Positions 1,240 to 50,609 of a stretch of DNA of 64,000 nt are shown here, in pieces. The position numbers and the translations under genes were made by a program. The stretch lies in NCBI RefSeq assembly GCF_006345805.1, contig NC_043001.1:30256001-30320000 (forward strand). The letters run 5' to 3'. The DNA comes from Octopus sinensis (taxonomy: Eukaryota). The notes beneath the pieces are model-generated. The model was given only the letters and a program-made list of their open reading frames with translations. It did not search any database and was not told where the DNA came from. Every line of letters begins with the position of its first letter. The stretch's first letter is position 1.

Positions 1240-1282
<43 letters not shown>

Positions 1283-5716: not shown

Positions 5717-5775
<59 letters not shown>

Positions 5776-13970: not shown

Positions 13971-14339
13971 ATGTTTCCAAAAGTCATGAAACATCGATGT
14001 CTATCACTCCTAAATAAGATTTGGGGCAAGTTGTCTTACCTGTCCATGACTTTCAAGTGTTTTAACACTCAGTGCTTTGAGAGAGTAATCTTCACCACAC
14101 CATATTGCAGCCTACTGGCAAATACATGGGGCATATCATTCACACATAGTAGTGTGTGAATAATATTCTTAAGGTCACCTTTTGCTCGCTTGTGGCCAAT
14201 TTAATGCTTTACCACTCATTCATTCTTAGCTCAATCTTAATTCGGTTTTTTGCACTATGATGGACCAGTGGTAAGCTACATTTTGAAATAAAATGATCGA
14301 AATTTGGTTCAGCAGAAAAAAGTTATGATAAAAAATGTA

Positions 14340-14860
14340 GGGCCTAATATTTACTTTGATTTGTAATTTCTCAGTTATTTAAAAGAAAAACTATATTTTA
14401 ATTATATCCTGTTAAAAGATCTCGATGAGTAGAATCTTCTGGTGAAGATCTCATTAAAAGATATTAGATAAAAAAAAAAGTATGTAGCTTTAAGTAGCCA
14501 ACATATTGGTATGTAATGCCTAATATTGACTTTGACTCAAAATATTTTAAATATGTAAAAAGTAAACTCTACTTTAATTACACCCTTTTAAAAGATCTAA
14601 ATGAGTAGAATCTTCTGGTGAAGACCTTGTTAAAAGATATTAGATAGAAAAAAGTTGTGTAGCCTTAAGTAACCAAAAAATTGGTAAGTAATGCCTAAGA
14701 TGAACTTTAACTCAACATATGTCAGCAATTTGAAAAGCAAACTACACCTTATTTGAGTTCAAATGAAAGATGTCCACCAGCTGTATCTTTTCTTACTAAC
14801 TCCATAAAAGTATATTAAAGAGAAAAAAGTTATGCAGCCTTCAATAATTGTCATTTGTAA
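14340..14860. repeat. diverged tandem repeat, ~176-bp unit, about 3 copies
   Basis: GCCTAA.AT..ACTTT recurs at about 14342, 14518 and 14693. GATGAGTAGAATCTTCTGGTGAAGA occurs twice. Confidence 0.75.
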
Positions 14861-15039
14861 ATATTTGTCTTACTTGCAATTACAAAGATATTTAAATGAC
14901 AACTTTTCAATAAAAGGCAAACAGAAAATCCAGTCTATAATTGTTTTGTTTTTTAGTTGTCCTGCTCTCCTAATTCCTTTGGCTCCTCATTGCTCATAAC
15001 TAGTGCTTTATATATTTTATTATTGCTCTCTTTTTTATT

Positions 15040-15432
15040 TCTTTTACTTGTTTCAGTCATTTGACTGTGGCAATGCTGGAACACCACCTTTAGTCAAGCA
15101 AATCAACCCCAGGACTTATTCTTTGTAAGCCTAGTACTTAATCTATCGGTCACTTTTGCCGAATCACTAAGTTACGGGGATGTAAACACACCAGCATTGG
15201 TTGTCAAGCGATGTTGGGGGGACAAACACAAACACACAAATATATACACACACAGACATATATATATACGATGGGCTTCTTTCAGTTTCTGTCTATTAAA
15301 TCCACTCACAAGGCTTTGGTCGGCCCAAGGCTATAGTAGAAGACACTTGCCCAAGGTGCCATGCAGTGGGACTGAACCCAGAACCATGTGGTTCGTAAGC
15401 AAGCTACTCACCACACAGCCACTCCTACACCT
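15040..15432 (-). mobile_element. SINE family A
   Basis: Reverse complement of 1861-2240. Confidence 0.85.
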
Positions 15433-16139
15433 ATTAAAAAATTTATTCTAAATAGGCAGATTTCATAATATTCATTTTAGAATTTTTAACAAAAATGAAT
15501 AGGCATCAATAAGAAATGAAATAATATGACAAAGAAGGCTAAATTTATTATTAGAATAAAAATTATTAATTTTTCTGCATCACCTGTAAAAAACAGGGGA
15601 CTAGAATGAAAAATTCAAGCAAGGGATAACAATATTCTTAAGTATTTAATAAACACATAAAATTACAGGTCAAGAAGCCTGAAATAAGAGGAAAGAGTTT
15701 AAAATATTGCTGCTAAAATAAAATTTGAATGGGTTGCCAGTTAAATAAAATATTCATATAAGCCAAGCTATTCAATACTGATCAATTATCTTTCACCCAA
15801 ATTATTTTACTATTGCTAAGCTTAACTGCAAATAAATTTTAAATTATTTTAATTTAAAGTGATAACTGCCATAGTAAAGTAAAGTGATAACTGCCATAGT
15901 ATTTTGTAACATTAATAATTAAAATTTTTTTATCTATAATTTTTTACAAATTTTTTACTATGGTAAAATTTAAGCCTATTTAAGTAATCAAATGTATACT
16001 TTGTTTTATTTTTGGCAAAATTATTTTATTTACTTTTAAAATATTAATTTTTAGTTAGTTAACTGTTTGTCAGTTCATTTTACTGTTAGGTAAATCTAAG
16101 TTTCTCTCAAATAAATGCAGATATCATAGAGTTAATCAT

Positions 16140-18509: not shown

Positions 18510-19110
18510 CATCATCTTCATCATCATCGTTTAATGTCTGCTTTCCATGCTAGCATGGGTTGGTCAATTTGACTGAGGTCTGGTGAACCAGATGGCTACA
18601 CCAGGCTCCAATCTGATCTGGCAGAGTTTATACAGCTGGATGCCCTTCCTAACGCCAACCACTCCGAGAGTGTAGTGGGTGCTTTTACGTGCCACCTGCA
18701 TGAGGGCCAGTCAGGCGGTACTTGCAACAGCCTCACTCAAATGGTGCTTTTTATGTGCCACCTGCACAGGAGCCAGTCCAGCAGCACTGGCAACGACCTC
18801 GCTTGAATGTTTTTTCATGTGCCACCACCACAAGTGCCAGTAAGGCGACGCTGGTAACCATCACGCTCAAATGGTGCTTTTTACATGCCCACCAGCATGG
18901 AAGCCAGACAGCTGTTCTGGCAATGATCCTGCTCAGATGGAGCTGTTAACGCTCCACTGTCACAAATGCCAGTCATTGAATTTGGTTCAATTTCGATTTC
19001 ACTTGCCCGAACAGGTCTTCACAAGCAGAGTTTAGTGTCCAATGAAGGGAGGTTGGCATGGGTGCCAAGCAGAGTTTAGTGTCCCATGAAGGGAGGTTGG
19101 CATGGGTGCC
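18510..19110 (-). mobile_element. SINE family B with a local 40-bp tandem duplication at its end
   Basis: (CAT)n start and reverse body. AAGCAGAGTTTAGTGTCC..TGAAGGGAGGTTGGCATGGGTGCC occurs twice. Confidence 0.8.
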
Positions 19111-19544: not shown

Positions 19545-19602
19545 ATGAAGCAAATTGTTCTGTTTCTTGGAATTTTTCTCCAAATAAATTTAGCAACATC
19601 TT
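19545..19602 (+). CDS. first coding exon (signal peptide) of the giant repeat protein
   Basis: CATTTTTCAG|AATC ATG, then MKQIVLFLGIFLQINLATS plus T|GTAAGT. Basic n-region, hydrophobic h-region, small-residue c-region. The consensus phase-1 donor matches the acceptor at 22841. Confidence 0.8.
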
Positions 19603-19627
19603 GTAAGTATCATGAAAATGCTTTTTC

Positions 19628-20150
19628 TATATCTATTATATAAAATCCATTCTGTCTGTCTGTGCGTGTGTCTTCTAGGATCTCGGGCATCCTCCATCCG
19701 ATTGCGCTCAAATTTGATATGTAGATACCGACAGTATCAGGGTGTGTATAACTCTTGAAAAAAATTACAAAAATCAATTCCAGGTGAGAATGCGATTGAT
19801 AAAGCCGAGGAAACGTGCATTTGTACATGCAAGTACATCAGCTGTTGCGATCGATTTTCCATCTAGATTTACCTCCAGCTAACCCATTTGCATGCATCGT
19901 TTTTGTCTTGCTTTTCTTCCATCAACATGTACATAATTGCACCTTCCATTTTTTGTTGTTTTTGTACTGCTTAAAGGCACGTTTCTTTCCTGCCAAGCTT
20001 ACTTGTTTAAACCATGTTTGTGTTCTCCTCATCAACAGCCTTATCATTACTGGTACTTTAAACTCTTCAGTTGCATATTTGTGTGAATAAAATCGTTTTT
20101 CTTTGGAATAGAAAAAAAGTCTATATTTCTTCTTTTGCTGGTGTCTCAAA
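19628..20150 (+). mobile_element. Helitron-like non-autonomous element
   Basis: Starts ATCTATTATATAAAAT..TCTGTCTGTCTGTG, as Helitron-N 5' ends do. The 3' boundary is uncertain. Confidence 0.45.
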
Positions 20151-21059
20151 TTTAGGTTAAATCAATGTTTCTCAAAGGGGAGGCCTATGGGACGGTCGGA
20201 CAAGTTGTTTTGAGAAAATTTGGTTTCAGTGCTTGACAACTCAGCACTGTCTATTGGACGGGGTTGGGGGCGTTTTGCTCTCTGTATATATTACCTCAGA
20301 AAATTTTGCTCTACAGTAAATATTTTATTTTACTATAAATGATTTTACTTCAAAATATTTTACATTCAAATGAAATAAAACATTAGAACAATGATAAAAA
20401 TGTTTTTATTGTTAAAATTCAATTTAATTTTTACTATTCTTATATTGGCTTTAATATCTAATGTATATACCTTTGCTCAACCAATGCAAATACCAATTTG
20501 GTTTCACAGAATTTTTTGAATTTGTAGTACTACTCTTCTCATTTATAAATTTATACTCTATCAACTCTACTATTTTCTAATATTAATTGCCTTTTGAGAT
20601 TGAAATATAGTAACAATATCGTTTAAATTCTACACACCATCTATTCTTTCTTTCTGCATTCTTAGCTAAAATCTATAATCTGTAGGCTTTCCTAACTTAA
20701 ATAGTGTAATATATTCTCAGACACTGCGTAAAAGTTTGTAAATTGACCATACAGATCATCATCATCTTCACCTTCATTTGACATCCACTTTTCCATGCTT
20801 GCAATATCAGAGGGAATTTTTTGAGGCAGATATTCTATGGCCAGATGCCCTTCCTGTTTCCAACCCTCACCTGCTTCCACGTGAGGCAATATTTTCCTGT
20901 AGTCAGACATGTTTTTCATGGAAAACAGGAAACAAACAACAACAATAAGGATGCTTGTTTACAACTATCAAGTGATATTAAGACACACACACACACACAC
21001 ATACATACACACATACACACATATATATATACTATATATATATATGTGTGTGTGTGTGT

Positions 21060-21285
21060 GCACATTAGGCTCAGATGTGGCTTTATGGTAAGAAGCTTGC
21101 TTCCCAACTACATGGTTTTGGGGTTCAGTCCCTTGCATAGTATCTTAGGCAAATGTCTTCTTCTGTAGCCTCAGGCCAACCAAAGCCTTGTAAGTGGATT
21201 TAGTAGACGGAAACTGAAAGAAGCCCATCGTATATGTGTGTGTGTGTGTGTGCGTGTATGAGTATGTGTGTGTGTGTGTGTATGG

Positions 21286-21320
<35 letters not shown>

Positions 21321-21520
21321 TGTGTGTGTATGTGTGTGTATGGGTGTATCTTTGTGTCTGTGTTTGTCTCCCACCCACTTCACAACTGGTGTCAGAGTGT
21401 TTATGTCCCTGTAACTTAGTTGTTTGGCAAAACAGACCAATAGAATAAGTACTTTGGTCGGCCCGAGGCTATAGTAGAAGACGCTTACCCAAGGTGCCAC
21501 ACAGTGGGACTGAATCTATA
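21060..21520 (+). mobile_element. SINE family A with expanded (TG)n, fused to an inverted head fragment
   Basis: Family A motifs. Explains the His/Thr and Cys/Val ORFs here. Confidence 0.75.
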
Positions 21521-22840
21521 ACTGACACATTATAAAACATTTTAGTTGCATTCAGTATTATCTGTAATGGAGTAAAATAAAAACTAGTACTCAATAGACC
21601 AGTGGTTCATAACCAGGTAGTCATGACCCCTGAGTGGGTCATTTGGGGTTTCTCGGGGGTGGGGGAGGGGTCACAGAGGATTTGGGAGAAAGCGATTCCT
21701 TAGACTAATGTAGATTTGTTATACTGCTCTCTCCTTCGTCCTTTCCCTCTCAACTGTGTCATTATTCTGCTATTCTTCATCCCTTTCCACACTGTCGGTC
21801 ATCTCCTACACTCTTCCTACATCCCCCAATTCATCCGTATGATTAATCACCCATACCCTTTATCCATCATTCACTACATCCACTAATCAACCCTACCCAA
21901 TCTACGCAGTCATCACCTGCTCTTCTTTACCTTCCCTCTAAATTTATTTATCATCCTTCAAGATTTGTTCACCTTTCATTATGTTCAAAAACACACACAC
22001 ACATACACACCTTATCTATCCCCTACCTCTAATCCATCTCTCACCCTCCCCATACACTCATGCAACAGTCTACCCACCAACACTCCTTGTTCTTCTATCT
22101 CCACTGATTTCTGCCTGAAACTTTTAAAGGCACACCTTGACTTCTCATCATAACTATTTTTATCTCACTCTAGCTCCAAATGGTCAGTCTCACTTTCTCT
22201 TCTATAATGCAAGTCCCCATGTAGCTAACTCTGCTAAACTAAGAAACCTGTTCTGTTCTGGCCCCCTCTCTCATAATTTAACCCTTATATACTACCATAA
22301 AGCTGCATCTTTCTCTACTGTAGTCCCACTCAGCTGAAGGGCATCTTGTTTTACAAGCTGCATAACAATCTCACTAATACTGAGGTCACAAAAAAAGTAC
22401 ACTCAATAAAGTGGCTGGCATGCATAAGCACATCCGGCTGTAGAAACCATGCCAAAGCAGACACTGGAGCATGATCATCATCATCATCCTCATCGCTTAA
22501 CGTCTGCTTTCTATGCTAGCATAGGTTGGACGATTTAACTGAGGACGAGTGAACCAGATGGCTACACCAGGCTCCAATCTTGATTTGGCAGAGTTTCTAC
22601 AGCTGGATGCCCTTCCTAATGCCAACCACAGTCTTCAAATCTGTTGGATCCTGACAAACCATTCAGCCTATGCCAGCATGGAATATGGACTTTAAAAGAT
22701 GATGAAGATGATATATGAGTGAGAGTGTGTATGTGTGCGTTTGTGAGTGTATAAATGTTTGCTTGTGTATACACACAAATAAACACACTCAAAAATGTTT
22801 CCTTTTTCATATTATTGATTAACATATATTTACTTTCCAG

Positions 22841-25800
22841 ATAAGTGGCCATCATACATTTCTGCAAATATGCCAGTTCTTTTGTCGAATACTGTTCAAG
22901 AGACAAACAAATACCCAAACGAGGCTTCTGGGAAATTAGTAACTAAATTAGTACCAACAACACAAATTCAACAACCAGAAAATATACAGCAATCTTCACT
23001 GTCACAAATGACATCCATTAATCCATTTAAACAAACAAAACCTATAAATCCTCTGATGGCAAAATTCTTGAGAACACGTGATGTATATGCACCAGAAAGA
23101 CAATACAGAGAGGTGAAGAGAATTGAAGTGATTCCAGAAGCTGAAAATAAAGTAATTTTACCATTATCACCAATATCAATGAAGAATAACATAGAAAGAA
23201 TATTTCCAAGTTTAAAAACAAAAAATTGGATAAAAACAGATAGGAAAATTGGACAAGTTGAAAAAAAGATTTTGAAAGAACTTTACAGAACATTGAGGAA
23301 GAAGCAAATGTCACTTAATAGAATGCCTGTGACAACGGAGAGAATGAAAACTGATAGTGAGAAACCATTGGATCTAGCAATAAAAGAAGTAGTAGAAAGC
23401 ATGTTGAAGAAAAATGTTATGCAAGAAAAAATGTTAGGATTGAAACCAAGAATAACAAAAGAAATGATAGAAAATTATTCACAAGAAAAAGAGCCAAAAA
23501 ATTCAAACAGGGAAATATTTGTGAAAGACACAATTCTAAAACTATTACCAAGTCTAATAAAGAATATCTCTTACAAAAGAATGCAAGAAATTGAAAGAAA
23601 AAATAGACATGAAGGAAGGCAGAGAAGGGATGCAAGAATATTGTTAACAGGAACAAAACAAGGGATATTTCAAGAGGCAGATCCTAGGTTATCAAGAATA
23701 GGACTAGAGAAGTCACCTAAACCAGTGGTAGGAGTTTTGCCAGGAATTGCAAAAGTTATGACACCTGGCCAAGAACAAAATGTCTTAACTAGAACAAATC
23801 ATAGAAACTCACCTGTCATAGTGTATCCTGCAAATGTACAAAGGATCTTGCCAAGAATGAATTACCAAAAGTTACCAGGATTATTACAAATATACCAGCC
23901 AAATATATTAGTAAGGAACAAGGAGAATGTAGTATCCAGACCATCCTATGCAATGTTCCCAGTAATGGCTCCAAATGTATTAGCTGCATCAGTACCAGCT
24001 GTTATTCAAAGAACACCAGACAATGCAGGAACTCATGGACTTTTACAAGATGTAAGGCAAGATATGTATAATGAAAACATTAATAGAATGCCAAAAATGT
24101 TACAAAATGGTGTAACAGGAATGATACAAAATGAGGCGCCAGTAATGGTACAAAGCTTGGTACCAGAGAAGGTTCATGTTGTAATGCCAGGAACACTTCA
24201 AAGTAATGCGGCAGGAATGCTGCAAAACGGTATGCCAGGAATGCTACAAAATGGTATGTCAGGAACACTGCAAAACAGTATGCCAATGATGCTACAAAAT
24301 AGTAGGCCAGGAAAGCTGCAACATGGTATGCCAGTAATGCTGCAAAATGGTAGGCCAGGAATTGCACAAAATGGTATGCCAGGAATGCTACAAAATGGTA
24401 TGTCAGGAACACTGCAAAACAGTATGCCAATGATACTACAAAATAGTATGCCAGGAAAGCTGCAACATGGTATGCCAGTAATGCTGCAAAATGGTAGGCC
24501 AGGAATTGCACAAAATGGTATGCCAGGAATGCTACAAAATGGTATGCCAGGAACACTGCAAAATAGTATGCCAATGATGCTACAAAATAGTATACCAGGA
24601 AAGCTGCAAAATGGTATGCCAGTAATGCTGCAAAATGGTAGGCCAGGAATTGCACAAAATGGTATGCCAGGAATGCTACAAAATGGTATGTCAGGAACAC
24701 TGCAAAACAGTATGCCAATGATACTACAAAATAGTATGCCAGGAAAGCTGCAACATGGTATGCCAGTAATGCTGCAAAATGGTAGGCCAGGAATTGCACA
24801 AAATGGTATGCCAGGAATGCTACAAAATGGTATGCCAGGAACACTGCAAAATAGTATGCCAATGATGCTACAAAATAGTATACCAGGAAAGCTGCAAAAT
24901 GGTATGCCAGTAATGCTGCAAAATGGTAAGCCAGGAATTGCACAAAATGGTATGCCAGGAATGCTGCAAAATGGTATGCCAGGAATGCTGCAAAATGGTA
25001 GGCCAGGAATTGCACAAAATGGTATGCCAGTAATGCTGCAAAATGGTAGGCCAGGAATTGCACAAAATGGTATGCCAGGAATGGCACAAAATGGTATGCC
25101 AATAATGCTGCAAAATGGTATGCCAGGAATGGCACAAAATGGTATGCCAGGAATGCTGCAAAATGGTATGCCAGTAATGCTGCAAAATAGTATGCCAGGA
25201 ATGCTGCAAAATGGTAGGCCAGGAATTGTACAAGGTGTAATGCAAAAATCTCAAGAAATCATATCACCAGGAATGGTGCAAGTTATGATACCTGGAAGTA
25301 TGCAAAATGTGATACCTGAAATAAGAGCAAGAAAAATGCAACATGTAATAAGCGGAGAAGATAAAAAAATGATATCAAAAACTGTTCAAGATACAGCAAA
25401 TACATATGCCAATTCAAGGCAACAAAATGATGAAAAAATGTTAAAAAATGACAACAAACAAGAAATATTTAAAAAGAATTCTATAAATAATTTGACAAAT
25501 GAGGAGAAAAAACAGTCAATAGAAAATTGGCAAATATCAAGAACATTACATGCACCATATCTAGAATTGAATAAAAACCCACATAATATGTATGGGAATA
25601 TATTTGAAACAAAGGAATTTAAAATTCAAGGAATCCCAGTTAGGCCATCATCAGGAAGCTTGCAACAAATGTTACCACAAATTTCCCATAGACTGCAAGT
25701 GCTATCTGGATCTGTGCAACAACCACCATTAACTATTCAAAAGATGAGGGTTCAATTAGAACCATATAAATCTGAAAGGAATCAATATATGTTACCGGGA

Positions 25801-28800
25801 ACTGTAGAAAGAATGGTTGAAGGAACAGTGCAAAAGATGTTACCTAGGGTTGTTGGAGAAATTTTAACAGGAAATGCACAAAGGATATTGCCAGAGAAAG
25901 GGCAATTGATGTTACATGGAACAGGACAAGAGATACTCACTGCAAAAGGACAAAGGATACAACATGGAACTGGACAGGGCATGTTACTTGGAACTGGGCA
26001 AAGGATTCTACCTGGATTTGGGCAAGGAATATTACCTGGAACTTGGCAACAGATGTTACCTGGAACTAAGCAACTGATGTTACCTGGAATTGGACAACAT
26101 AGGTTAAGTGTAACATGGCAAAGAATATTGCCTGGAACTGGGCAAAGGATGTTGCCTGGAACTGGACAAGGAGTGATACTTGGAACTGAGCAAGGGGTGT
26201 TACCTGGAACTGGACAAGGAGTGATACTTAGAACTGGGCAAGGGGTGTTACCCAGAACTGGACAAGGGGTGTTACCTGGAACTGGACAAGAAACGATACT
26301 TGGAACTGGGCAAGGAATGTTACATGGAACTGGACAAGGAGTGATACTTGGAACTAGGCAAGAAGTGTTACCTGGAACCGGACAAGAAACGATACTTAGA
26401 ACTGGGCAAGGAATGTTACATGGAACTGGACAAGGAGTGATACTTGGAACTGGGCAAGGGGTGTTACCTGGAACTGGACAAGGAGTGATACTTGGAACTG
26501 GGCAAGGAGTGTTACCTGGAACTGGACAAGGAGTGATACTTAGAACTGGGCAAGGAATGTTACATGGAACTGGACAAGGAGTGATACTTGGAACTGGGCA
26601 AGGGGTGTTACTTGGAACTGGACAAGGAGTGATACTTGGAGCTGGGCAAGGGGTGTTACCTGGAACTGGACAAGGAGTGATACTTAGAACTGGGCAAGGA
26701 ATGTTACATGGAACTGGACAAGGAGTGATACTTGGAACTGGGCAAGGGGTGTTACCTGGAACTGGACAAGGAGTGATACTTGGAACTGGGCAAGGGGTGT
26801 TACCTGAAACTAGACAAGGAATGATACTTAGAACTGGACAAGGGGTGTTACCTGGAACTGGACAAGAAACAATACTTGGAACTGGGCAAGAAATGTTACA
26901 TGGAGCTGGACAAGGAGTGATACTTGGAACTGAGCAAAGGATGATACCTGGAACTGGACAAAGTACAATACAAGGTACATTACTTGGAACTGGACAACAG
27001 ATGTTACCTAGAACTGTACAAATGATGTTGCCAACAACTAAGCAAGTTTTGTTACCTGCATTTCGACAAAGGATATTACTAGGAACTGGGCAAGGAATAT
27101 TAACTGGAAGTGAACAAGGGATGTCACATGGATCAGAAAAAGGTGTGTTACTAGGAACTGGACAGAGGATGTTACCAGCTACTATGCAAGGCATGCTACC
27201 TGGAACTGCAAAAGGTATTTTATCAAGAACTGGGCAAGTGATGTTACCAACTTCTAAACCAGGGATACTTTTCAGAACTGGGCAAGTGATGTTACCTGGA
27301 AGTGAGCAAGTGATGTTGCCATCTACTGAGCAAGAGTTGTTACTTGAAACTAGGCAAGGGATAATGCCTGGAATTAAGCAAGAGATATTACCTGGAACTG
27401 TAGAAAGAATATTATCAGAAACTCAACAAGGGATGTTACCAATAACTCACCAATGGATATCACCAACAAATGAACAGGGAATGTTATTTGGAATTGGTCA
27501 AGGAATGTTCCCTGGAAATGAGCAAGTGATTTTACCTGGAACTACTGAAGGAATATTATCAGACACTGAGCAAAGAATAGTACCTAACACTGGGCAAGGG
27601 ATATTACCTGCTGGGAAAGTGAAGTTACTTGCAATGAGGCAAGGCATGTTACCTGCAACTAGGCAAGAGATGTTACCTGGAATTAAGCAATGGATGTTGC
27701 CGGGAACTCAGCAAGGGATGATACATGCAGTTCCACAAAAAACATTACCTGTTATTGTGCAAGTAATATTACCTGGAACTGGACAACAGATGTTACAGGG
27801 AACTCAGCAAAAGATATTGCCTGTAACTGAGCAATGGATGTTACCTGTATTTAAGCAAGGGGTATTACCTGGAACAGGTCAAGGTATGTTACTTGGAACT
27901 GGGCAAGGGATACTACCTGGAACTGAACAGGCAATGCTACCAGGAAGAAGACAGGGTATCTTTGTACAGGGGAACTTACCAGAAAGTGCACAAAGGATCT
28001 TACCTAAAAATGAGCAAGTAATTTTACCTGCAACTGAACAAGGATCACTACCTGGAAATGTAATATGGATGTTACCTAGGAATTGGCTAGGGATGTTAAA
28101 TGCAACTGGGAAAGGAACTTCATCTGGAATTGTGCAAGAAGCATTACCAGGAATGAAACAAAAATTCCTTCTTGGATATAGGCAAGGTATGTTACCTGGA
28201 ACTGGACAAGAGACATTTGCAGGATATTTGCAAAAGGCCTTAGTTAAAAATGGACAAAATGTGTCACCTGTAACTGGACAACAGATATTACCAGAAAATG
28301 TACAAGAAAGGTTAAATGGTACCAGACATAGAATTTTACCAGTAGAGCAAATCATTTTGCCTGGAGGTATAAAGGAAATATTACCTGTAGCAAGGCAAGA
28401 GTATTTTCCTGAAACTGTGCCCAGTTTGTTACCTGTAGCTGAGCAAGGGGTAGTAGAAGGAAATGTGCAAACAATATTAACTAGCAATAGTCAAAGCTGG
28501 TTCCCAAATAATTTGCAAGGAAACATACCTAAAAATATGCAAGTTGTGGTACCTGGAAATGTACAAGGGACAATATTAGGAACAGTGAAAGAAATACCAC
28601 CTCCAGCTAAGCCAGTGATGATACCAGGAACTCTTAAAGAGATCTACCCTGGTAATTGCCATTGGACTGTACCTAAAATTGGACAAGGGGTGTTACCAGA
28701 AAATGGTCAATGGATCTTTCCTGGAAATAGACAAGTAGTGGTACCTGGAACTAGACAAGGGATGTTACTTAAAACTGGACAAGGGGTCTTACCACAAGTT

Positions 28801-30148
28801 GAGCATAGACTATTAAATGAAAATATGCAGAGGGATTTAACTGGAAATATTAATGGCATCTTACTTAGAAATAGGCAAAATGTGTTACTTATACCTGTGC
28901 AAGGGATTTTACCAAGAAATCATCAAGGGATTTCACCTGAAACTGGATATATGATTTCATCAGACAATGTTCAAAATAACTTCATTGGAACTAAGCAGAT
29001 GTATCCTGAATTTGTTCATAGCTTAGGTAACAATCAGCAAGAGAGTTTAGCTGTAATTGAGCATGAAGAGTTGCCTAGACCCCTCCAATGGACCCTAGCA
29101 GAAAATTGGCAAGGGATGTTACCTGGAGCTGTTAAAGGGACCTTTCCAGAAACTTTGCAACTGACCTTACCACAAAACAAACAGGGGATCTTACCTGGAA
29201 CTGGGAAAGAGATGTTAGCTGTGACTGGGCAGAGGGTGCTACCAGGCACTAATCAAAGGATCTTAGTTGGAATTAGAAAAGATATATCACTTGGAAGTGG
29301 GCAAAGGATGTTGCCAGCAAATAGGCAAAGTATCTTACTCCCAACTGTTCAAGGAGTGTCACCTGCAAACTGGTATGTGATTTTACCTGGGACTGGACAA
29401 TCAATGGTATCAGGGACTAGGGAAAGGATATTACCAGGAACAGGATATGGAATTTTACCAAAAAATGTGCAAAGGATCTCACTTAATCCTGGGAAGGTGA
29501 TCTTTACGGGAGGTAGGCAAAGTGTGTCGCCAGAAGCTATTCAAGGAGCTTTACTAGGAAACAGACAAATGATATTACCAAAAAATGGTCAAAGGGTGTT
29601 ATCTGGAATTGATCAAGGGATATTACTTGCAAATGGACAACAAAAGTTTGGTGGACATGGGCAACAAATTTCCTCAGGAAATATACAAGGGAATTTGCTG
29701 AGAACTGTACCAGTGATGTTACCTGGAACTGTTCAAAATGCAGAACAATATACAACATCACGAATGATGCCAGATATGAGAGGATTAGTAATAATTCCAA
29801 CGTTATCACAAGGAATAAATCCTAAAATGTGGCAAAGAACAGTGCCAAACAGGCTAAATTTGGGAATAGTACAAAACTCACTAAGTACCACGCAAACACT
29901 TTTACCTGAAATATCAGTAAGGAAAATGTATGGAACATTTACCCAAGCAAAGAATGGAATACCACTAAGAGCAAAACACACAAAACTACAAAACAAATTC
30001 AAATCAATACCAGTTAACCCCCAGACGGGTTTAATGACTTTTCTGGAAACTGGAAATAATAGACAGATTTGGAAACCATCTTCAAACCAACATCATGTAG
30101 CAGAGATTGAATTAAAACAGGAAGCAGCTGGCTCTAAACCACAAAAAC
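22841..30148 (+). CDS. 7308-bp symmetric (phase 1-1) exon encoding the bulk of a giant secreted octapeptide-repeat protein
   Basis: TTTACTTTCCAG|AT AAG TGG acceptor and AAA C|GTAAGT donor. 2436 codons without a stop in AT-rich DNA. The ORF track's C-terminal His/Thr run is intronic microsatellite read-through. Confidence 0.92.
24217..25224 (+). repeat. coding tandem array 1: 42 x 24-bp units (MLQNGMPG type) with 144-bp and 288-bp higher-order repeats
   Basis: Units counted from the translation. The order MSG/TLQNS/xLQNS/KLQH/MLQNGR/IAQNG recurs every 6 units. Confidence 0.95.
25789..29739 (+). repeat. coding tandem array 2: about 165 x 24-bp units (VLPGTGQG type), with a homogeneous core at ~26130-26960
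   Basis: GGAACTGGACAAGGA motif at 24-bp spacing. VIL/VLP alternation (16 aa), and R/MLH every 48 aa in the core. Confidence 0.95.
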
Positions 30149-30169
30149 GTAAGTTGAGTTTTCATACAT

Positions 30170-30270
30170 ATGTACATATACATACATACATACACAAGCA
30201 CACATGCATGCATGCAGACACACACATACACATACACACACACACACATACACACACGCACACACACACA
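30170..30270. repeat. (CA)n/(CATA)n microsatellite just inside the intron
   Basis: Directly visible. Confidence 0.9.
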
Positions 30271-30449
30271 TCAGGTGTATGCAGTTGATGTATCATACCC
30301 CATGTATTATACCCAGCAGTATCTGTTGCAGGGATGAATTTTCACACACCCGGTCTGATGTTTATTGTATTTTTAACACAGTATTTCCTGATGTGATGTT
30401 ATCTTGGAACAAATACTGCAGTAACTAGCCTATCAAGTGTACATACTTG

Positions 30450-30493
30450 GAAGGAGGAGAAGAAGAAGAAGAAAAGTTTGATACACAGCTGAT

Positions 30494-30528
<35 letters not shown>

Positions 30529-31410
30529 CTCCCTCTCTCACACACACACACACCCTCTCTCTCTCTTTCTCGAGAAGAGGGGAGGGGGGATGGAGGAGGG
30601 GAGGGGAGGGAAGAAGGTAAGGAGGAAGAACAGTAGGAGGAAAAAGAAGAAGAGGAGAAAGGAAGAAGAAATAGAGGAGAAGGAAGAGGAGGAAAAAGAA
30701 AAGGAGGAAGAAAAGGGGGATGAAGAAGAGGAGTAGGAGGAAGGAGAAATAGAGGAGGAGGAAAAGAGGAGTAGGAGGAACAAGAAGAGAAAGAGGAGGA
30801 AGAAGAAAAAGAAGAAGAGGAGGAAGGAGAGAAGGGGATGAAGAAGAAGAGTAGGAAGAAGAATAAATAGAGAAGGAAAAGGAGGAAGAAGAAATAGAGG
30901 AGAGGGAGAGGAAGAAGAGAAGGAGGAAGAAGAGAAGGAGGTAGAAGAGGAGTAGGAGGAATAAGAAATAGAGGGTGGAAGAGGAGGAGGGGGAGGTGGA
31001 AGATAAGGAAGAGAATGAAGAAGAAAAAGAAGAAAAGAAGGAGGAAGTAGAGGGGAGGAGGAGTAGGAAGAAATGGAGGAGTATGAGGAAGAAGAGGAGG
31101 AAAAAGAAAGGGGAGGAGGAGAGGAGAAGAAGAGGCAGAGGAGGGGAAGAGGAGGGGATTGAGGAGGAGAGGTGAGGAGGAGGAAGCAGCAGAAGAGAAG
31201 GTGGAAGAGGAAGAGGAGGAGGAGTCGGGAAAAGAAGATGAAGAGGAGGAAGAGGAGGAGTCGGGGAAAGAAGATGAAGAGGAGGAGGAGGAAGGAGGAT
31301 AAGAAGAAGAAAAGGCAAAGCTGAGGAGGAGGAGAGGGGAGAAAGGAAGGAGGGTAGGAGAGGGAGGGCAGGAAGAAGAAGAATAGGAGGAGGAGGAGGA
31401 GGAGGAGGAT
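30450..31410. repeat. ~900-bp almost pure purine (GAG/GAA) low-complexity tract with CT/CA runs
   Basis: Directly visible. Explains the Leu/Ser/Pro/Phe and Glu/Lys ORFs. Confidence 0.95.
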
Positions 31411-31635
31411 ATGTATTAGCACACAAAGAACAAAAATTTACTGAGCATATGAGACAGGTATGAAATGGGCATCAGATACAAATGCCATGGATATGAGCTA
31501 AAAACTACAGAGTAAACTTAAATTTTGTATCTTGAAGTATAAAAACTGGTAATTCACATCAAAATAAATGAATACTGCTTTATTTATCAATAATAAATCT
31601 CTGAACGAGATGTAAACAGTAACCGCTCGACAACG

Positions 31636-31912
31636 TAAAGTATAATAGCCATCTCAATATGGCTAACCACTAAGGGTGGGTGTTACTGTAGCTTTTAGCC
31701 CCAGGAGATCATCGTCTCCAGCTGGCTTTAGGCACACTATCTGTGCCCTTATGGTATTTGCAAAGGGAGGTCATCCCTCTCTCGTAAGCCTAAGTGATAT
31801 GCACGGATTGCAGTTTCGAGGTATTTGCCTCTTGTCAACGCACGGTAATCACCGGTTTACAGTAACACCCACCCTTAGTGGTTAGCCATATTGGGATGGC
31901 TATTATACTTTA
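31636..31912. mobile_element. MITE with 55-bp terminal inverted repeats
   Basis: 31636-31690 and 31858-31912 are reverse complements with one mismatch. Ends are TA. Confidence 0.9.
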
Positions 31913-32451
31913 TGCTTTATTTATTAAATATCTATAAAACTGAAATGCCAAAAAGTTGTTTGATTTCTTGGTTATTTGTCTCATTTTGGGATGGGAACAG
32001 TTTAAGGGGCGGTAGACGGGGTCGGATTAGTCTCAAAATTTACATGGGTGGGTGGGTTAAATAGGGTGGGCAATGGTGTGAGGAGGGTTGCAAGTCGCTC
32101 AGGGCTACCGTTTGGTTGCCATCACCACCAAAACCCAAGCAAAGCATGGGTCAAAATAGCTAGTCTTAATATATAAAACAAAGTTTGTGTGTGTGTATGT
32201 GTTTCTTATGGATTCAAAAACTGGGTTACCAATTTGGCGGTGTTTAGCTAAGGCAGGCAACTCTTTATATCTTAGAGCATAATGAGAAAATGTTTAAAAT
32301 ACATGGAGTTTTACCTGGGAATGAAATTTCGAAGATATACTGTCAACTTTATTAGTAGTTTTTAGTAGACAATCTTTTAATGTGAAATATGTTTGCGCTT
32401 TGTTTAGCCCAGATGTAGCAGACATATCACATTGTTTACCACAGACACACT

Positions 32452-32512
<61 letters not shown>

Positions 32513-33646
32513 GTTGTGGTGAAAAAAATACTTTTTCTCAGAATATTTTGCACAATAATTTTTTGAGAAATCTGGACAGCTTTCTTACTGCAAACTATTC
32601 AACTTCAAATTTGAATTGTTCATTCTTGGAAGTCAAGTAGACTGAGATGTACATAAATTGTTATCATATAGAGTGGAAGTTCAGTACAAAGATTTGAACT
32701 CATTATCTTGTGGTTAGTAATCCATTACCTTAAATTTGAAGCCATAAAGTCTTTAAACATTACTTTACTGGGTTCAGTCTTTCAACTGTCACCATGATCG
32801 GGTATCACCTTCAAAATTTAATTAATCATACTGACCTCAGTACATATTTCAATCTGGCATTTATTTTATAGATTCTCTGCTTGATGAACTGCTAGCTTTG
32901 AGGCATGATGGGACACAATATGCGATTTACCAACAAATGTAAACACACACATATTAGATGCAAGAATGATTGTGTGTTTGAGAAGTTTGCTTCCCAACCA
33001 CATGGTTCCATGTCCAGTCCCTTTGCATGGTACCTTGGGCAAGTGTTTTCTACTATAGCCATAGGCCAACCACAGACTTGTGACTGAATTTGGTAGACAG
33101 AAACTGCAGCATTATTCATCAGAAAATGACTGAAAAACATGTTTATACAGAAGAGTTGTTTGCTTCATACTCCTTGTGTGCTGATACTGCCCATAAGAAA
33201 GGAACAAATAATTCAACGTGGTTGTAGGTCATAACACCCAGGCAATGCCAAGGTGCATTGCTAGTCAATTAATAAATCATTGGGAAGAAGTAGTTTCTTT
33301 CATAAGTACAAGGTTTCATATGCATATTAAAGAGCAGGAACAAGATGCAGTGCACCTGAGCACCGTATACAATAATTTCATTATTATTATTAAGATGTTA
33401 ATGATGCTCATTTCTTTCTTAAAGGCATTAGAAATAAAACATCATCATTTTATGTCTGTTTTCCATTCTGGAATGAGACATTAGTGATGCAACAAAGAAC
33501 TGAAGCTGCCTTGTAGACTGAGCCAATCAGAAGTTTACATCAACTCTTGTTTGAATGCATCCATATCCTGAGATTTTAAAAATAAGCTTTGCTACTACAA
33601 TCTACAGATTGTATATAATTAGAATTTGTTTTCTTTATTCCATTAG

Positions 33647-33774
33647 CTGCTAACTCAACAGACCAGAATATTACTGAAGAGGTGAAGGCTTCAGTCTCAG
33701 TCACCAGTATTACATCATATTCTTGGATAATATATATTATTCTGCTTGCCTTAAATCTCCTGACTGGAATGTAG
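33647..33774 (+). CDS. candidate terminal exon encoding a GPI-anchor-signal-like tail
   Basis: TTTGTTTTCTTTATTCCATTAG|CT phase-1 acceptor, reading (P)ANSTDQNITEEVKASVSVTSITSYSWIIYIILLALNLLTGM*. Two N-glycosylation sequons, a Ser/Thr spacer and a terminal hydrophobic run. Confidence 0.65.
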
Positions 33775-33929
33775 ATATATATATATATACACATATGTAT
33801 ATCATACTTTAAGATAAAGCATTAGAAAAAGTGAGTATCCAGCCACAAAATACTTGCTAAATGAACTTATTAAACCTTCTTAATAACCTATTTGCTTCAT
33901 CTGTGGGAGAGTCGCAATTGGTTGTATTG

Positions 33930-34400
33930 ACAGGGCTGACTGCCTTCTAGTTTAAAAGTTTATATCCATTTTGCCACTTATGCAGCCCCATGTCCCTGAC
34001 AACGATTTTTAACTCTTCTTGGTCCAATGCACCTAAGCGTAAAACTGGCAATATGTGAAAATATATCGGAATGTTATTTGGCAATAGAAGTAGTGAACAA
34101 TCAGCAAATGTGTCAGCTTGTATGTCTTGCAAACAACTTGCACATGCAAGTGCTACCAGTCAAAAACTCCACATACCGGAAGCCAGCAACTGTATGGGGT
34201 CATCAGGAGAGAATGCGCACCGTTTCGGGGCCTACTTCTCAACGGCATCAATGCGCACTGACCCCCCTCACTGATATGAGGCCCCACTTGCTAGATCAGC
34301 TGGTTATCAAATAAAGCTCAATATCCTTCTAGCCATCGCTCATCATCTCTTTTTAACCAAATCCAGTGGCTAGCCTTCTCCACTGTAGATTTGATATCAG
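33930..34400 (-). mobile_element. degenerate non-LTR retrotransposon C-terminal fragment (HERO/NeSL-like)
   Basis: The minus-strand peptide IKSTVEKASHWIWLKRDDERW resembles the AxxASxWxWLKR end of RLE-type ORFs. The rest is degenerate. Confidence 0.35.
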
Positions 34401-34918
34401 TCATGGTGGTATTGATACCTTCAAATAAGTAAAAATTGTGATAGACTAACATACTACCCAGGTGAATATATGTATCTTGACCACTTCGTTCCTAAAGGAA
34501 AATTAGTTAATTTATCTCCTGAGAATGTCACACATAAAAGGAATGTTTTTTTTTTTATTTTGGTTTTAACATTCATTTTTTCGTAGTCGCATGAATTAGA
34601 AATATAGATATTTGTAAATGGATTATTGGAATAAATATTTTAAAATAAAGATTAAATTAAAACTAGATGATAAGATACCAGTCCAAAAATGTAAACAGAC
34701 TCAAGCCAATATTTTGGTTAAATTAGTCAAAGAAATAAAATATTGTATCTGGCTCTGGCTTTGGCAAGAGTTTCAATGCTTCACTTTGTATTTAGTAAAC
34801 TAGCACAAGAAACTCATATTTTGGTTTCCTTAGAAATACATGTAGTTTTTCTGAATTTTTATTAACTTATATATCTTTTATCATTATTGGATAAAGTCAT
34901 TATTTCATTTTCCTTCAG

Positions 34919-36180
34919 ATAACTTGGCAGTACCAGTGAACGGTATATTTATGCAAAAGGTTCAAATGTCTTCAAACTACCAAAATAATTCTGAGAATCC
35001 AAAGAGTTTAAAACAATCATCAACCCAACAAAGGAGGGAGAACATCATTAAAAGATCTCTTTTTCACAATTATGCCTCCGCATCTGCACCTCTTAAAAAA
35101 CCAAAAGCTCTGAGAAACAACATACCTAATTTAATCAATTCAGTAATTCCAGCATTTAAGCAATCGAGTCATGAGCCAAAAGGAAGTTTAACACTTCCAT
35201 TTTCTGGTTATAAATCTCATGTACAGATGCTTGATAATGACTTTAGAACACTTTCAAAGAAAGACACATCTCATCTACAAACAATAACTAATTCAGAAAT
35301 GTCACACTCTCAAGACAGAAACAAAATACCAAATACAAATATTGGTATAAAGTCAAATGTATATGCAATGCCAAATAATGGATATACTATACCTTCCACT
35401 GAATACAAGTTTTACACACTAAGACAAAATGGTAAAAGTTATTCTAGATTACCAAACAAACTGCTACAATTGCTTCAACATAACCTTTTGTATCATTATG
35501 CTGGAAAAAATGTACCATTTGAAGGTTTTAGAAAGTTATCACCAATACTTTACAATCCCTCTGTGCCTTTTAGTATACAACAACCTAGACCTTACATACT
35601 TCAACAAATACCAGTAATGAATTTTGAAAGGCCAGTTACTAGAGATGGACCTTACATAGTAGAACCAGGACTACATTATCTTTATCAGCAGCCACCATCA
35701 GGATATGAAACTCGTATTTCAGGAACAGTATCAATTGGTGCAAACCAGATATATACGACCAAAAGAGGTAAAGTGTCGTATAACCCGTATAGAAACTACA
35801 ACCAAGATAAAACGTTATTGAGTAAACCTCCTGTTAAATATAATTCTACATTAAAGTCATTACTTAATCTTGAAAATAATTCGAAAATTTTGAATTCCCT
35901 TGGTTTAAAACATACTAACAAAATTGAACCAAAGACTACAAATGTCTACATATTAAAAACTATTCCTGAATCAAATAATATTACCAGAAGAAATATAAAA
36001 GCAATTAGCAAAGATGTTAAAATTGCACTTCCAAGAAATTCAGAGGGAATACATTTGGATTCCAATTCTACAAGTAAAAGAAGTATAAGAGGAATTTTTT
36101 CATTACGAAATGAACAAGCAAAAAAATTTTCTTTGCATAATTATCATGATTCTGGTTATGAAAATAATCACAATAGATAG
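34919..36180 (+). CDS. terminal exon (420 aa, Tyr/Pro/Asn/Lys/Ser-rich) of the giant protein
   Basis: TATTTCATTTTCCTTCAG|AT AAC TTG phase-1 acceptor, joining as C+AT=His. Open to TAG at 36178-36180. 58+7308+1262 = 8628 nt = 2875 aa plus stop. Confidence 0.8.
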
Positions 36181-36415
36181 AAATAGAAATATATTTCTTA
36201 GAAAATGCATATATGCACACACACACACACACACACATTAGTACGCGATATGTGTAAGGCTATAATAACATATATTCATACAAGTATTTGTATGAATGTG
36301 CTTATGTATGTATGTGTGTATATATACATATATATATATATATACTGGAGTAAGCACATAAATGTGAAACAAGGTGGAAAAAAGAGTACTCAAATACCAG
36401 AGGTAGAGTAATATG

Positions 36416-36511
36416 CTTTATTTAAAAGCAGCAGAAATATAACAAAAGCTGTTACTCAGAGTAAACTCTGAGTAACAGCTTTTGTTATATTTCTGCTGCT
36501 TTTAAATAAAG
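36416..36511. repeat. perfect inverted repeat with 47-bp arms and a 2-nt loop
   Basis: 36416-36462 is the exact reverse complement of 36465-36511. Confidence 0.95.
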
Positions 36512-37041
36512 TATATATATATATATATTCAAAAATACATGTCAATTCATATTTAATAATATCTAAGAACAATAAGATTACTAATTTAATATAAATAATT
36601 ATCAAATTGTACTGATGAACCAAAATAATTAAGCTTAATTAATCCAGATGCTAAATGAAACAATTCTATTAAAAATTCTGAAAAACATAATGGCAAAATA
36701 AGTATTTTTTGCAATAAATATTCTGCTAAGAAAAATAATATCAATATTTTATGAAGCTTTACGAACAATGTTTAATTGTAAATTAATGCACAAGGATTAT
36801 AATCTTCAAAAAAAAAATACATATAACAAAATATCAGTTTCTTAGTAAAAGATACAAGGCCTTGTATTTTTTCGTTCCTTATTTTATTTTTTCATGTTTT
36901 ATTTGTTTCAGTCTTTGAGTTACAGTGAAACTAAGCACAGCCTTGAAGAGTTTAGTGGAGTAAATGGACCCCTGTGCTTATTTTTGAGTTCGGTGCCTAT
37001 TATATTGGTCCTTTTTGTCAAAGTGCTAGGTTACAGGGATG

Positions 37042-41260: not shown

Positions 41261-41492
41261 ACTCATCTGTCTTGTCTTGCTAGTTATTTGAAAACCTCAC
41301 GAGTCCCGGTATCATGTACAAACACCAGTACACTCTGTAAAGTGGTTGGTGTTAGGAAGAGCATCCAGCTGTAGAAACCATGTCAAAGCAGACATTATAA
41401 CTTGGCATGGTTTGTACACTCAACTCCTGTCAAACCATCAAACCCATAGCAGCATGGAAAAAGAATGTTAAATGATTATATATATATATATA

Positions 41493-47168: not shown

Positions 47169-47170
<2 letters not shown>
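46740..47170 (+). mobile_element. SINE family B
   Basis: Closely matches 3790-4255. Confidence 0.85.

Positions 47171-47199
<29 letters not shown>

Positions 47200-50570: not shown

Positions 50571-50609
<39 letters not shown>

Follow-up and report, generated by a model that had tools for sequence, protein, structure and literature searches.

Molluscan shell-matrix, byssal and adhesive proteins, taken as a kind, combine a leader, one huge repeat-bearing exon and a biased composition, and molluscan repetitive structural proteins further show fast amplification of their units and a lack of relatives beyond a narrow lineage. These features recur in the locus described here, which lies in a 64,000-nucleotide stretch of DNA from Octopus sinensis (the window), but no sequence relationship to such proteins was shown for its predicted product. 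Abductin, from the bivalve hinge ligament, is a secreted molluscan protein of about 136 amino acids with a 19-residue leader, 58 mol% Gly, 1% Pro and Gly- plus Met-rich short repeats (GGFGGMGGGX; PMC9999432). The octopus protein resembles it in its Met/Gly-rich short repeats (Met 17% and Gly 18% in repeat block A). However, it is 2,875 residues long, is built on an eight-residue unit, lacks GG/GGG blocks and reaches 11% Pro and 12% Gln within block A.

Long Pro-Gly-plus-Gln arrays between non-repetitive termini, as found here, are also present in wheat HMW glutenin (PGQGQQ) and in spider MaSp2 and flagelliform silks (GPGQQ, GPGGX), and may imply a mechanism based on beta-turns and Gln hydrogen bonds. 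These glutenin and silk motifs were absent from the octopus protein in motif counts (0 occurrences of PGQGQQ, GPGQQ and GPG), there is no homology, and its termini have none of the Cys through which glutenins polymerise. Cornifin/SPRR proteins and involucrin, with Pro/Gln repeats of eight to ten residues, are envelope precursors that become cross-linked by transglutaminase, the SPRRs being small, intracellular, Cys-rich and vertebrate. The octopus protein likewise has a period of eight residues in which Pro and Gln occupy fixed places, and its Gln and Lys content would permit isopeptide cross-linking. In contrast to the SPRRs, it is giant and holds one Cys; Cornifin membership was rejected because repeat block B2 scored 14.1 bits (E=0.054) against the Pfam family, far below the cut-off of 34.8 bits. 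Finally, bacterial ice-nucleation proteins display a hierarchy of 8-, 16- and 48-residue repeats. This hierarchy and the Thr/Gln/Gly-rich units are shared here as an architectural analogy only, since no sequence or Pfam match was found and organism, unit and context differ.

Exon structure and translation start

The gene model comprises three exons on the forward strand of the window, to which all coordinates below refer (19545-19602, 22841-30148 and 34919-36180). Both junctions are of phase 1, and the joined coding sequence of 8,628 nt specifies 2,875 codons plus a TAG at 36178-36180. Each intron begins with GTAAGT (at 19603 and 30149) and ends in AG (at 22839-22840 and 34917-34918). The exon coordinates, arithmetic and canonical phase-1 joins of the original prediction were reproduced from the ATG, the splice sites and the length of the coding sequence, and the locus has the appearance of a genuine, very large animal gene with three coding exons. 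Intron 1 (19603-22840, 3,238 nt) carries microsatellites and SINE-like interspersed repeats, copies of which were located at 21067-21467. Intron 2 (30149-34918, 4,770 nt) starts with GTAAGT followed by an (AC)n microsatellite, and a purine-rich (GAA/GGA)n tract of 0.8 kb occupies about 30592-31409. The first AATAAA after the stop codon (36505-36510) is a candidate polyadenylation signal, judged by its sequence only.

Exon 2 (22841-30148, 7,308 nt, residues 20-2456) is a single unbroken coding exon. Its frame contains 0 stops, vs. 145-168 in the other forward frames and 40-197 in the reverse ones; mononucleotide shuffles predicted 9-65 stops per sub-region (65 in block B2), and 0 were observed in every one. 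Since the nearest in-frame stops upstream of exon 2 (22816, 27 nt before the first full codon) and of exon 3 (34852) sit just before the proposed acceptors, both reading frames open there.

Exon 1 (19545-19602) encodes the start codon and a 19-residue signal-peptide-like sequence, MKQIVLFLGIFLQINLATS, and ends in phase 1 before GTAAGT. No other ATG..GT phase-1 candidate in the 10 kb that precede exon 2 has a perfect GTAAGT donor; the donors of rival hydrophobic candidates are weaker (5/6 positions), and most of these candidates lie within a (TG)n/(CA)n microsatellite. In line with the signal peptide originally proposed, the leader follows the classic n-h-c pattern and places Ala-x-Ser before the junction, as judged by hydropathy and the -3/-1 rule, which suggests that the 2,875-residue protein is probably secreted. 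An acceptor-like TTTTTCAG is found 4 nt upstream of the ATG at 19545, and therefore a further-upstream untranslated exon may exist.

Translation could also start at 22870, where an in-frame ATG lies 29 nt inside exon 2, and could then yield a non-secreted protein. That start, or a leaderless upstream exon, would give a basic low-complexity scaffold inside cells, for instance a condensate-forming or nucleic-acid-binding protein. Its strong basicity (pI about 10.2 and net charge +131, for about 312 kDa without the signal peptide) would suit such a role, and the case for exon 1 is one of sequence logic. However, a good acceptor sits precisely where the exon-2 frame opens, and the one upstream ATG candidate that has a perfect GTAAGT, and that encodes an n-h-c leader, agrees with this frame in phase (phase agreement alone has a one-in-three chance); on balance, we regard an intracellular product as clearly unlikely.

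Octapeptide repeats and flanking regions of the predicted protein

The whole protein is rich in G (11.9%), L (10.3%), Q (9.7%), P (7.9%), T (6.5%) and M (5.5%), which agrees with the residues highlighted earlier, as does the count of a single Cys, located in block B2. Residues 20-290 (22841-23652) form a Lys/Arg/Glu-rich, non-repetitive region with weakly predicted helices, and the net charge of +24 over these N-terminal 270 residues is in keeping with the basic pro-region that had been proposed. At the boundary between this region and the repeats lies RQRR (residues 279-282; 23617-23628), the sole R-x-[KR]-R site across the whole protein and a putative proprotein-convertase-type cleavage site. 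Exon 3 (34919-36180) encodes residues 2456-2875 plus the TAG, a non-repetitive basic tail (+34) enriched in Asn, Ser, Lys and Tyr. Described beforehand as Tyr-rich, the tail is indeed enriched (24/420, 5.7% vs. 1.8% overall) but not strikingly so. No folded domain was predicted at either terminus by single- or two-sequence models (AF2 mean pLDDT of 45 for the N-terminal region and 33 for the C-terminal end), low pLDDT being no proof of disorder.

Period-8 repeats span residues from about 290 to 2320 and amount to about 200 eight-residue units. They start with a pre-repeat region (23653-24192, residues 291-470) of degenerate octapeptides, in which autocorrelation at lags 8, 16 and 32 was above background. 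The two predicted repeat blocks were recovered by TRF and lag-8 autocorrelation; TRF reported a 24-nt unit and a 144-nt higher-order unit, the latter present 7 times in block A (93%) and 6.9 times in block B (84%). Block A (24193-25227, residues 471-815) contains 43 units of PGMLQNGM arranged in the 144-nt (6-unit) higher-order repeat, and is followed by a non-repetitive, Q/K/S/N-rich linker (25228-25791, residues 816-1003). Block B comprises about 165 units of PGTGQG(V/M)L that degenerate towards the 3' end. Its first part, B1 (25792-26982, residues 1004-1400; PGTGQG(V/M)(L/I), 27% Gly), alternates with a 16-residue period and is organised into a higher-order repeat of 48 residues (144 nt; 84% identity). 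B2 (26983-29742, residues 1401-2320) consists of about 115 degenerate octapeptides that keep the Gln, Leu and Pro positions while the rest has drifted, and the 3' end of exon 2 (29743-30148, residues 2321-2456) is again non-repetitive. We propose that recent tandem amplification of 144-nt super-repeats, each of six units, expanded the blocks. Within the repeats, variability at third-codon positions did not exceed that at first and second positions.

Elastin-like, coacervating behaviour, as the original prediction had it, was deduced from PG dipeptides only. The likeness consists of 19 occurrences of Φ-P-G-x-G (LPGTG) within hydrophobic, Gly-rich repeats; in contrast to elastin, there is no AAA run, no Ala/Lys cross-linking domain and no Pfam or sequence match, and an invariant Gln is present. 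Further, the 2P+G value of the repeats is 0.31-0.40, and the elastomer threshold of Rauscher et al. 2006 is reportedly roughly 0.6. Because the Pro and Gly content is well below that of typical elastomers, the elastin-like idea was not supported and amounts to a weak analogy, while other elements of the initial reading (a large gene, a leader-like exon, repeat blocks and no known family) held up. The tissues that it named (egg cement, spermatophore, sucker) are guesses.

In the degenerate block, lag-8 retention was best for Gln (64%), Leu (54%) and Pro (46%), and only 6-11% for Val, Glu and Arg; this position-specific conservation is as compatible with a regular repeat fold as with a random-coil elastomer, if not more so. 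If the repeats of the secreted protein folded into a beta-solenoid or beta-spiral, each half-turn taking up 8 residues and each coil 16, Gln would form ladders, Leu/Val/Met would fill the core, and the product would act as a stiff fibre, rod or surface-organising scaffold. The 8/16/48-residue hierarchy in both blocks, comparable to that of bacterial ice-nucleation proteins, the strict positional conservation of Gln, Leu and Pro/Gly despite drift in the rest of the unit and a 2P+G value that is low for an entropic elastomer would all agree with this fold. Nevertheless, the register of the Gln phase shifts about 6 times along block B, which would break a continuous solenoid, and no Pfam repeat family (ice nucleation, pentapeptide, RTX etc.) scored above its cut-off, so that we consider this fold possible but doubtful.

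The leader-like start, basic pro-region, single furin-type site and many near-identical units are also what a polyprotein precursor of many small bioactive or antimicrobial peptides would display. That reading is hardly credible here: the units follow one another directly with no spacers, neither dibasic or monobasic processing sites nor Gly-Lys-Arg amidation signals separate them, and the 25 dibasic pairs in 2,875 residues are mostly outside the repeats, in the N-terminal region, the linker and the tail.

Family searches and the orthologous last exon

Searches for Pfam families, PDB entries, homologues and literature gave no match to the protein, in line with the earlier claim that it belongs to no characterised family. 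All 380 matches in a representative-library search fell on the repeat blocks, and the best 9 of the 380 were unrelated short-period repeat proteins. Homologue searches with the N-terminal region found no relatives, and no orthologue of the giant exon was retrieved, 85% of the length being without relatives. A search of 5.8 billion protein clusters recovered no annotated protein and none derived from a transcript across the exon 2/3 junction, and the P-G-x-x-Q-x-Φ-L unit was not found in the searched literature. Reflectin, suckerin and collagen had been excluded beforehand, and motif counts bore this out; His runs were absent as well, with one HH in the protein.

The sole relative found was the last exon of another species (Logan contigs L001-L003, from three runs), with 70% amino acid identity. 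It keeps the exon-3 acceptor and polypyrimidine tract, and the last 288 nt of intron 2 align to the contig at 89% identity. All four internal indels (9, 27, 9 and 6 nt) are in frame, and a 1-nt indel alters the last ~20 residues. The best-conserved stretch (35515-35706, …KLSPILYNPSVPFSIQQPRPYILQQIPVMNFERPVTRDGPYIVEPGLHYLYQQPPSGY) is 83-90% identical to the orthologue, vs. 55-75% elsewhere. The exon-3 dN/dS was 0.58 (NG86; bootstrap 0.42-0.82), a value below 1 that may be flattered by an inflated dS, because non-synonymous divergence (0.146) roughly equals that of the adjacent intron (about 0.11). Amino-acid constraint is weak.

This weak constraint, the lack of relatives for 85% of the length and the lack of a match in the protein collection would be expected of a minisatellite-derived, decaying or young reading frame with fortuitous splice-like sites and no selected product, and repeat arrays can remain open through amplification of an open unit. 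However, ~776 non-repetitive plus 920 strongly diverged repeat codons contain 0 stops vs. >120 expected, exon 3 has kept its frame open in the two species despite 14% nucleotide divergence (P=0.0018 if substitution were neutral), its four internal indels all being in frame, and three independent splice signals agree in phase. A locus without function is therefore highly unlikely, and a fast-evolving, lineage-restricted gene is the best reading.

Proposed role of the protein

With moderate confidence, we favour a lineage-restricted gene of three coding exons for a secreted, Cys-poor, basic octapeptide-repeat protein of extracellular material. The hydrophobic N-terminal leader would route the precursor to the secretory pathway, where the Lys/Arg-rich, partly helical N-terminal region (~260 residues) may be removed at RQRR282. 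What remains would be a very basic chain of about 280 kDa, with ~200 octapeptides of the form P-G-x-x-Q-x-Φ-L followed by the Asn/Ser/Lys/Tyr-enriched tail. Self-association of the repeats would involve the hydrophobic pair (Φ-L), which recurs at regular spacing, together with the invariant Gln, whose side chain would form hydrogen bonds or possibly be cross-linked to Lys by transglutaminase, and the high positive charge would tether the protein to polyanionic partners. Because the mature chain would be Cys-free and has no recognisable globular domain, the product would most likely serve as a matrix, gel, coat or glue outside cells.

Gene structure and coding evidence

The three coding exons on the forward strand (19545-19602, 22841-30148 and 34919-36180), which the original prediction had joined in frame, were fully reproduced with regard to coordinates and phase. 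Both junctions are in phase 1, and the joined coding sequence of 8,628 nt encodes 2,875 residues and ends with TAG at 36178-36180. Exon 1 starts at the ATG at 19545, which opens the leader MKQIVLFLGIFLQINLATS, and reaches GTAAGT at 19603. The giant exon 2 is delimited by the acceptor TTTCCAG/AT at 22840/22841 and the donor AAAAC/GTAAGT at 30148/30149, directly followed by an (AC)n microsatellite, while exon 3 begins at the acceptor TTTTCCTTCAG/AT at 34918/34919. Among the ATG-to-GT phase-1 candidates within 10 kb upstream of exon 2, exon 1 alone had a perfect GTAAGT donor; other hydrophobic candidates had weaker donors and lay mostly inside (TG)n/(CA)n microsatellites.

No stop codon was found in the exon-2 frame, compared to 40-197 in each of the remaining five frames. 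All six sub-regions of exon 2 were free of stops, where shuffled sequence gave 9-65, and this includes the non-repetitive parts, with 450 codons at the N-terminal side, 188 in the linker and 135 at the C-terminal side. Further, the nearest upstream in-frame stops lie 27 nt (exon 2) and 69 nt (exon 3) before the first full codon, and hence both ORFs open at their acceptors. The open three-exon structure is far beyond chance. No paralogue was detected by tblastn elsewhere in the 64-kb window.

A C-terminal query of 575 residues spanning the exon 2/3 junction retrieved a single match, a genomic exon-3 ORF of another species (P0001, 385 aa, 70% identity) from the Logan assemblies of SRR11869384, -90 and -91. 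The contigs encoding P0001 are genomic: ahead of the acceptor they carry 288 nt of intron that share 89% identity with the window. This acceptor, TTTTCCTTCAG/ATAACTTGG, is identical to that of the window and the frame is open from there on. Nucleotide identity within exon 3 was 86%. The orthologue carries four internal indels of 9, 27, 9 and 6 nt, and a fifth of 1 nt, approximately 20 codons from the end, which alters its extreme C-terminus. The latter is an insertion in an A-run (1455-1475 of contig L001 vs. 36120-36140 of the window), carried by the contigs of all three runs; the called orthologue ends in ...EQAKSLFVA, and the downstream nucleotides align in another frame with those encoding the window's terminal ...HNYHDSGYENNHNR and its stop. 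The extreme C-terminus of the protein is apparently dispensable, to judge from this alignment.

The Nei-Gojobori dN/dS of exon 3 was 0.58 (bootstrap 0.42-0.82), and dN (0.146) was about equal to the divergence of the adjacent intron (~0.11), indicating that amino-acid constraint is weak. The best-conserved 64 residues (…SPILYNPSVPF.IQQ.RPYILQQIPV.NFERPV.RDGPYIV…) showed 83-90% identity, compared to 55-75% elsewhere. When neutral substitution was simulated over 400 codons with the observed rates and spectrum, a mean of 6.4 stops arose and only 0.18% of the simulated sequences stayed open. At the level of this comparison, maintenance of the frame argues firmly for a coding sequence. A non-functional minisatellite that happens to be open is contradicted both by the stop-free sub-regions of exon 2 and by the neutral simulation, and we consider this explanation very improbable.

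Several other elements were observed in and around the gene. Intron 2 harbors a 0.8-kb, almost pure purine tract of (GAA/GGA/AGG)n on the forward strand (30592-31409; GC skew 0.39, AT skew 0.36). Tracts of this type form triplex or H-DNA, and this one yields long spurious ORFs on the reverse strand (30425-31426). A near-perfect palindrome with (TA)n flanks, unique in the window, is located at 36411-36516, 230 nt 3' of the stop codon; its two 52-nt arms are 98% complementary and 2 nt apart, and the first AATAAA (36505) sits in the 3' arm. This palindrome may correspond to a hairpin within the 3' UTR or to a small foldback element. SINE-like interspersed repeats of several families (130-300 nt, both orientations, 76-92% identity) were present in both introns and absent from the exons. 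They were located at 1256-3113, 5555-5969, 7773-8223, 15007-15446, 18514-18824, 21067-21467, 32981-33106, 41489-41886, 46974-47179, 50003-51979, 52369-52882 and 62902-63088, and their translated fragments give rise to recurring ...DALPNANHSVSVVGAFY... pseudo-ORFs. In the GC-richer 40-48 kb stretch, a reverse-strand ORF of 221 aa with a CCHC zinc knuckle (45516-46181; Pfam zf-CCHC, 18.4 bits, just below the cut-off) is followed by one of 144 aa on the same strand (45033-45467), and both probably represent a retroelement gag remnant. Two short satellite-like arrays, in which units of 175-182 nt are repeated in tandem with 62-90% identity, were found at 12663-12993 (2 copies) and 14335-14828 (3 copies). 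An Rfam scan of the window returned nothing.

Protein architecture and repeat units

The putative signal peptide (residues 1-19) combines a basic n-region with a hydrophobic core of 13 residues, positions -3 and -1 are Ala and Ser, respectively, and heuristic assessment gave a maximum 10-residue Kyte-Doolittle mean of 2.63. Translation from the internal ATG at 22870 would leave out this leader and yield a non-secreted product, an alternative that we regard as distinctly unlikely. The region from residue 20 to 290 is rich in Lys, Arg and Glu (net charge +24) and ends with RQRR (residues 279-282), the only R-x-[KR]-R site in the protein, and residues 291-470 show a weak period of eight. Then follow block A (residues 471-815), with 43 units of consensus PGMLQNGM; a non-repetitive linker rich in Gln, Lys, Ser and Asn (residues 816-1003); block B1 (residues 1004-1400), with units of PGTGQG(V/M)(L/I); and block B2 (residues 1401-2320), where the same unit progressively degenerates. 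The non-repetitive C-terminal part (residues 2321-2875) includes the exon-3 portion, which is Asn/Ser/Lys-rich, contains 24 of the 52 Tyr residues and has a net charge of +34. The whole protein has one Cys, a net charge of +131 and a pI of 10.2, with a mature mass of ~312 kDa. AF2 models of the N-terminal 300 residues (pLDDT 45, some helices) and of exon 3 (pLDDT 33), built on inputs of one and two sequences, respectively, show only the lack of a confidently predicted fold.

In block A, the higher-order unit is 144 nt long and corresponds to six octapeptides (7 copies, 93% identity), while block B1 displays super-periods of 16 and 48 residues with 84% identity. Within block B2, lag-8 retention was highest for Gln (64%), Leu (54%) and Pro (46%), while Val, Glu and Arg were retained at 6-11%; that these three residues are the best kept in the degenerate block points to a constrained skeleton, P-G-x-x-Q-x-Φ-L, where Φ denotes a hydrophobic position. 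The amino-acid pattern shared by the A and B units was recorded as P-G-x-x-Q-x-x-Φ. A common DNA origin of the two blocks was also considered, but their 24-nt consensus sequences were identical at 10-11 of 24 positions, a level that cyclic-shift controls also reached (up to 11/24), and common descent is therefore unsupported. Entropy by codon position revealed no excess at the third position and thus adds no evidence of purifying selection in the repeats. On the reverse strand, ORFs run across the repeat blocks at 24080-25135 (351 aa), 25782-27194 (470 aa) and 27879-28487 (202 aa). These ORFs arise from the 24-nt periodicity, encode poly-'AYHF' and 'PCPVPS' pseudo-peptides, and do not merit annotation as genes.

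A peptide polyprotein would be expected to carry processing sites between its units; none are present, and we give this explanation hardly any credence. The main rival reading is a regular solenoid or spiral formed by the repeats. Position-specific conservation and the 8/16/48 hierarchy fit such a structure at least as well as they fit the elastin-like idea, yet overall we judge it unlikely.

Relatives and known families

Searches of the protein collection for homologues of the N-terminal 459 residues and of residues 1401-2455 retrieved no relatives. The giant exon of the orthologue is absent from that collection too, so that the lack of relatives partly reflects poor coverage of the lineage and does not prove orphan status. 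A HMMER scan of residues 21-1200 against 1.84 billion representatives gave 380 matches, and since the best stretches listed all start at query position 395 or beyond, all 380 fall on the repeat blocks. Nine of the top matches were rejected as relatives, as they proved to be unrelated proteins, whose different repeats of 7-8 residues (DKDGKPLV, TTNSVPVL, EGPLQNST, SGLLANNT and GMPSGMSG, among others) match in lattice or composition. Neither Pfam with the full-length protein (nothing above cut-off), nor a PDB sequence search with both protein ends, nor an exact look-up of the exon-3 ORF, nor a search of JGI metagenomes for relatives of exon 3 produced any record, and literature searches on the peptides, on 'octapeptide repeat' with cephalopod and on octopus arterial elastomer gave nothing usable.

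In line with the original prediction, the motifs of reflectin, suckerin and collagen were absent, and Pfam, PDB and motif counts revealed no match to a characterized family. Reflectins are defined by repeated [M/F]D-x5-MD-x5-MD-x3/4 in a Met/Tyr/Arg/Asn-rich context; the corresponding regular expression had no matches, and the dipeptide MD does not occur in the 2,875 residues. Suckerins alternate Gly/Tyr-rich modules (GGY, GGLY) with Ala/His-rich ones (PMC9999432). Here, GGY, GGLY and runs of at least three Ala were all absent, and HH occurred once; this single HH is also the outcome of the comparison with histidine-rich beak proteins, which covered His runs alone. Uninterrupted Gly-X-Y triplets and the Pfam Collagen domain define collagen, but no run of five or more G-x-x triplets and no Pfam Collagen match were detected, and the period is 8, not 3. 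In gel-forming mucins, Pro, Thr and Ser dominate the repeats, and Cys-rich vWD/C8/TIL/CK domains lie on either side, while this protein has a single Cys, no vWD or related Pfam matches and an overall content of 6.5% Thr, 5.2% Ser and 7.9% Pro.

While the gene model and the family negatives of the original prediction stood, its elastin-like, coacervating mechanism and the tissues it suggested found no support. Elastin and tropoelastin alternate hydrophobic domains of the VPGVG/GVGVP type with Ala/Lys (KA, KP) cross-linking domains. The protein contains 19 LPGTG-type motifs but, in contrast to elastin, has neither Ala runs nor KA/KP domains and shows no sequence match. Further, 2P+G was 0.40 in block A, 0.37 in B1 and 0.31 in B2, well below the elastomer boundary of about 0.6 or more that Rauscher et al. 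2006 reportedly described.

Other likenesses are functional or architectural analogies only. Abductin, a molluscan Gly/Met rubber, is small and built from the decapeptide GGFGGMGGGX, with ~58% Gly and ~1% Pro (PMC9999432), whereas block A contains 18% Gly, 11% Pro and 17% Met in the unit PGMLQNGM. HMW glutenin and MaSp2 are comparable through their Pro-Gly-Gln turns. They and flagelliform silk are characterized by units of PGQGQQ, GYYPTSPQQ, GPGQQ or GPGGX; in the protein, PGQGQQ, GPGQQ and GPG were not found, and PGQ occurred once. SPRR and involucrin are likewise analogous in their octa- to decapeptide Pro/Gln units cross-linked via Gln; Cornifin/SPRR (PF02389) scored 14.1 bits (E=0.054, residues 512-582 of the B2 query) against a gathering cut-off of 34.8 bits. 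Ice-nucleation proteins are analogous in their 8/16/48 periodicity.

A candidate extracellular material

Taken together, this is most likely a fast-evolving, lineage-restricted gene encoding a very large predicted secreted protein without globular domains. We give about even chances to an extracellular material protein, that is, a matrix, gel, coat or glue. This is suggested by the near-absence of Cys, the extreme length, the hydrophobic pair and invariant Gln in every eight residues, the high positive charge, and the one furin-type site, located where the basic region meets the repeats. The Gln residues may form a hydrogen-bond ladder or serve as transglutaminase sites, and the high positive charge could bind polyanions. 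Secreted low-complexity tandem-repeat material proteins are a known class, while a description of the P-G-x-x-Q-x-Φ-L unit was not found in the literature searched. It is a long shot that this is the main protein of a cephalopod extracellular material whose molecular basis has hitherto not been identified, with this undescribed design and its Gln ladder or transglutaminase site; candidates for such a material would be the rubber-like elastic fibers of the octopus aorta, egg-stalk or chorion cement, or a spermatophore tunic.

At present, the gene is a lead rather than a discovery, one among many invertebrate orphan repeat proteins. With two blocks, 144-nt super-repeats and a long decaying tail, it provides a clean example of how repeat genes grow and of how rapidly they evolve. 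If expressed and secreted, the protein would represent a new sequence design among natural protein materials, a Pro/Gly/Gln/Leu unit of eight residues present in ~200 copies along a strongly cationic chain of 300 kDa that is free of Cys, and a testable candidate for the unsequenced materials that soft-bodied molluscs employ in egg attachment, spermatophores, vessel elasticity and mucus scaffolds.
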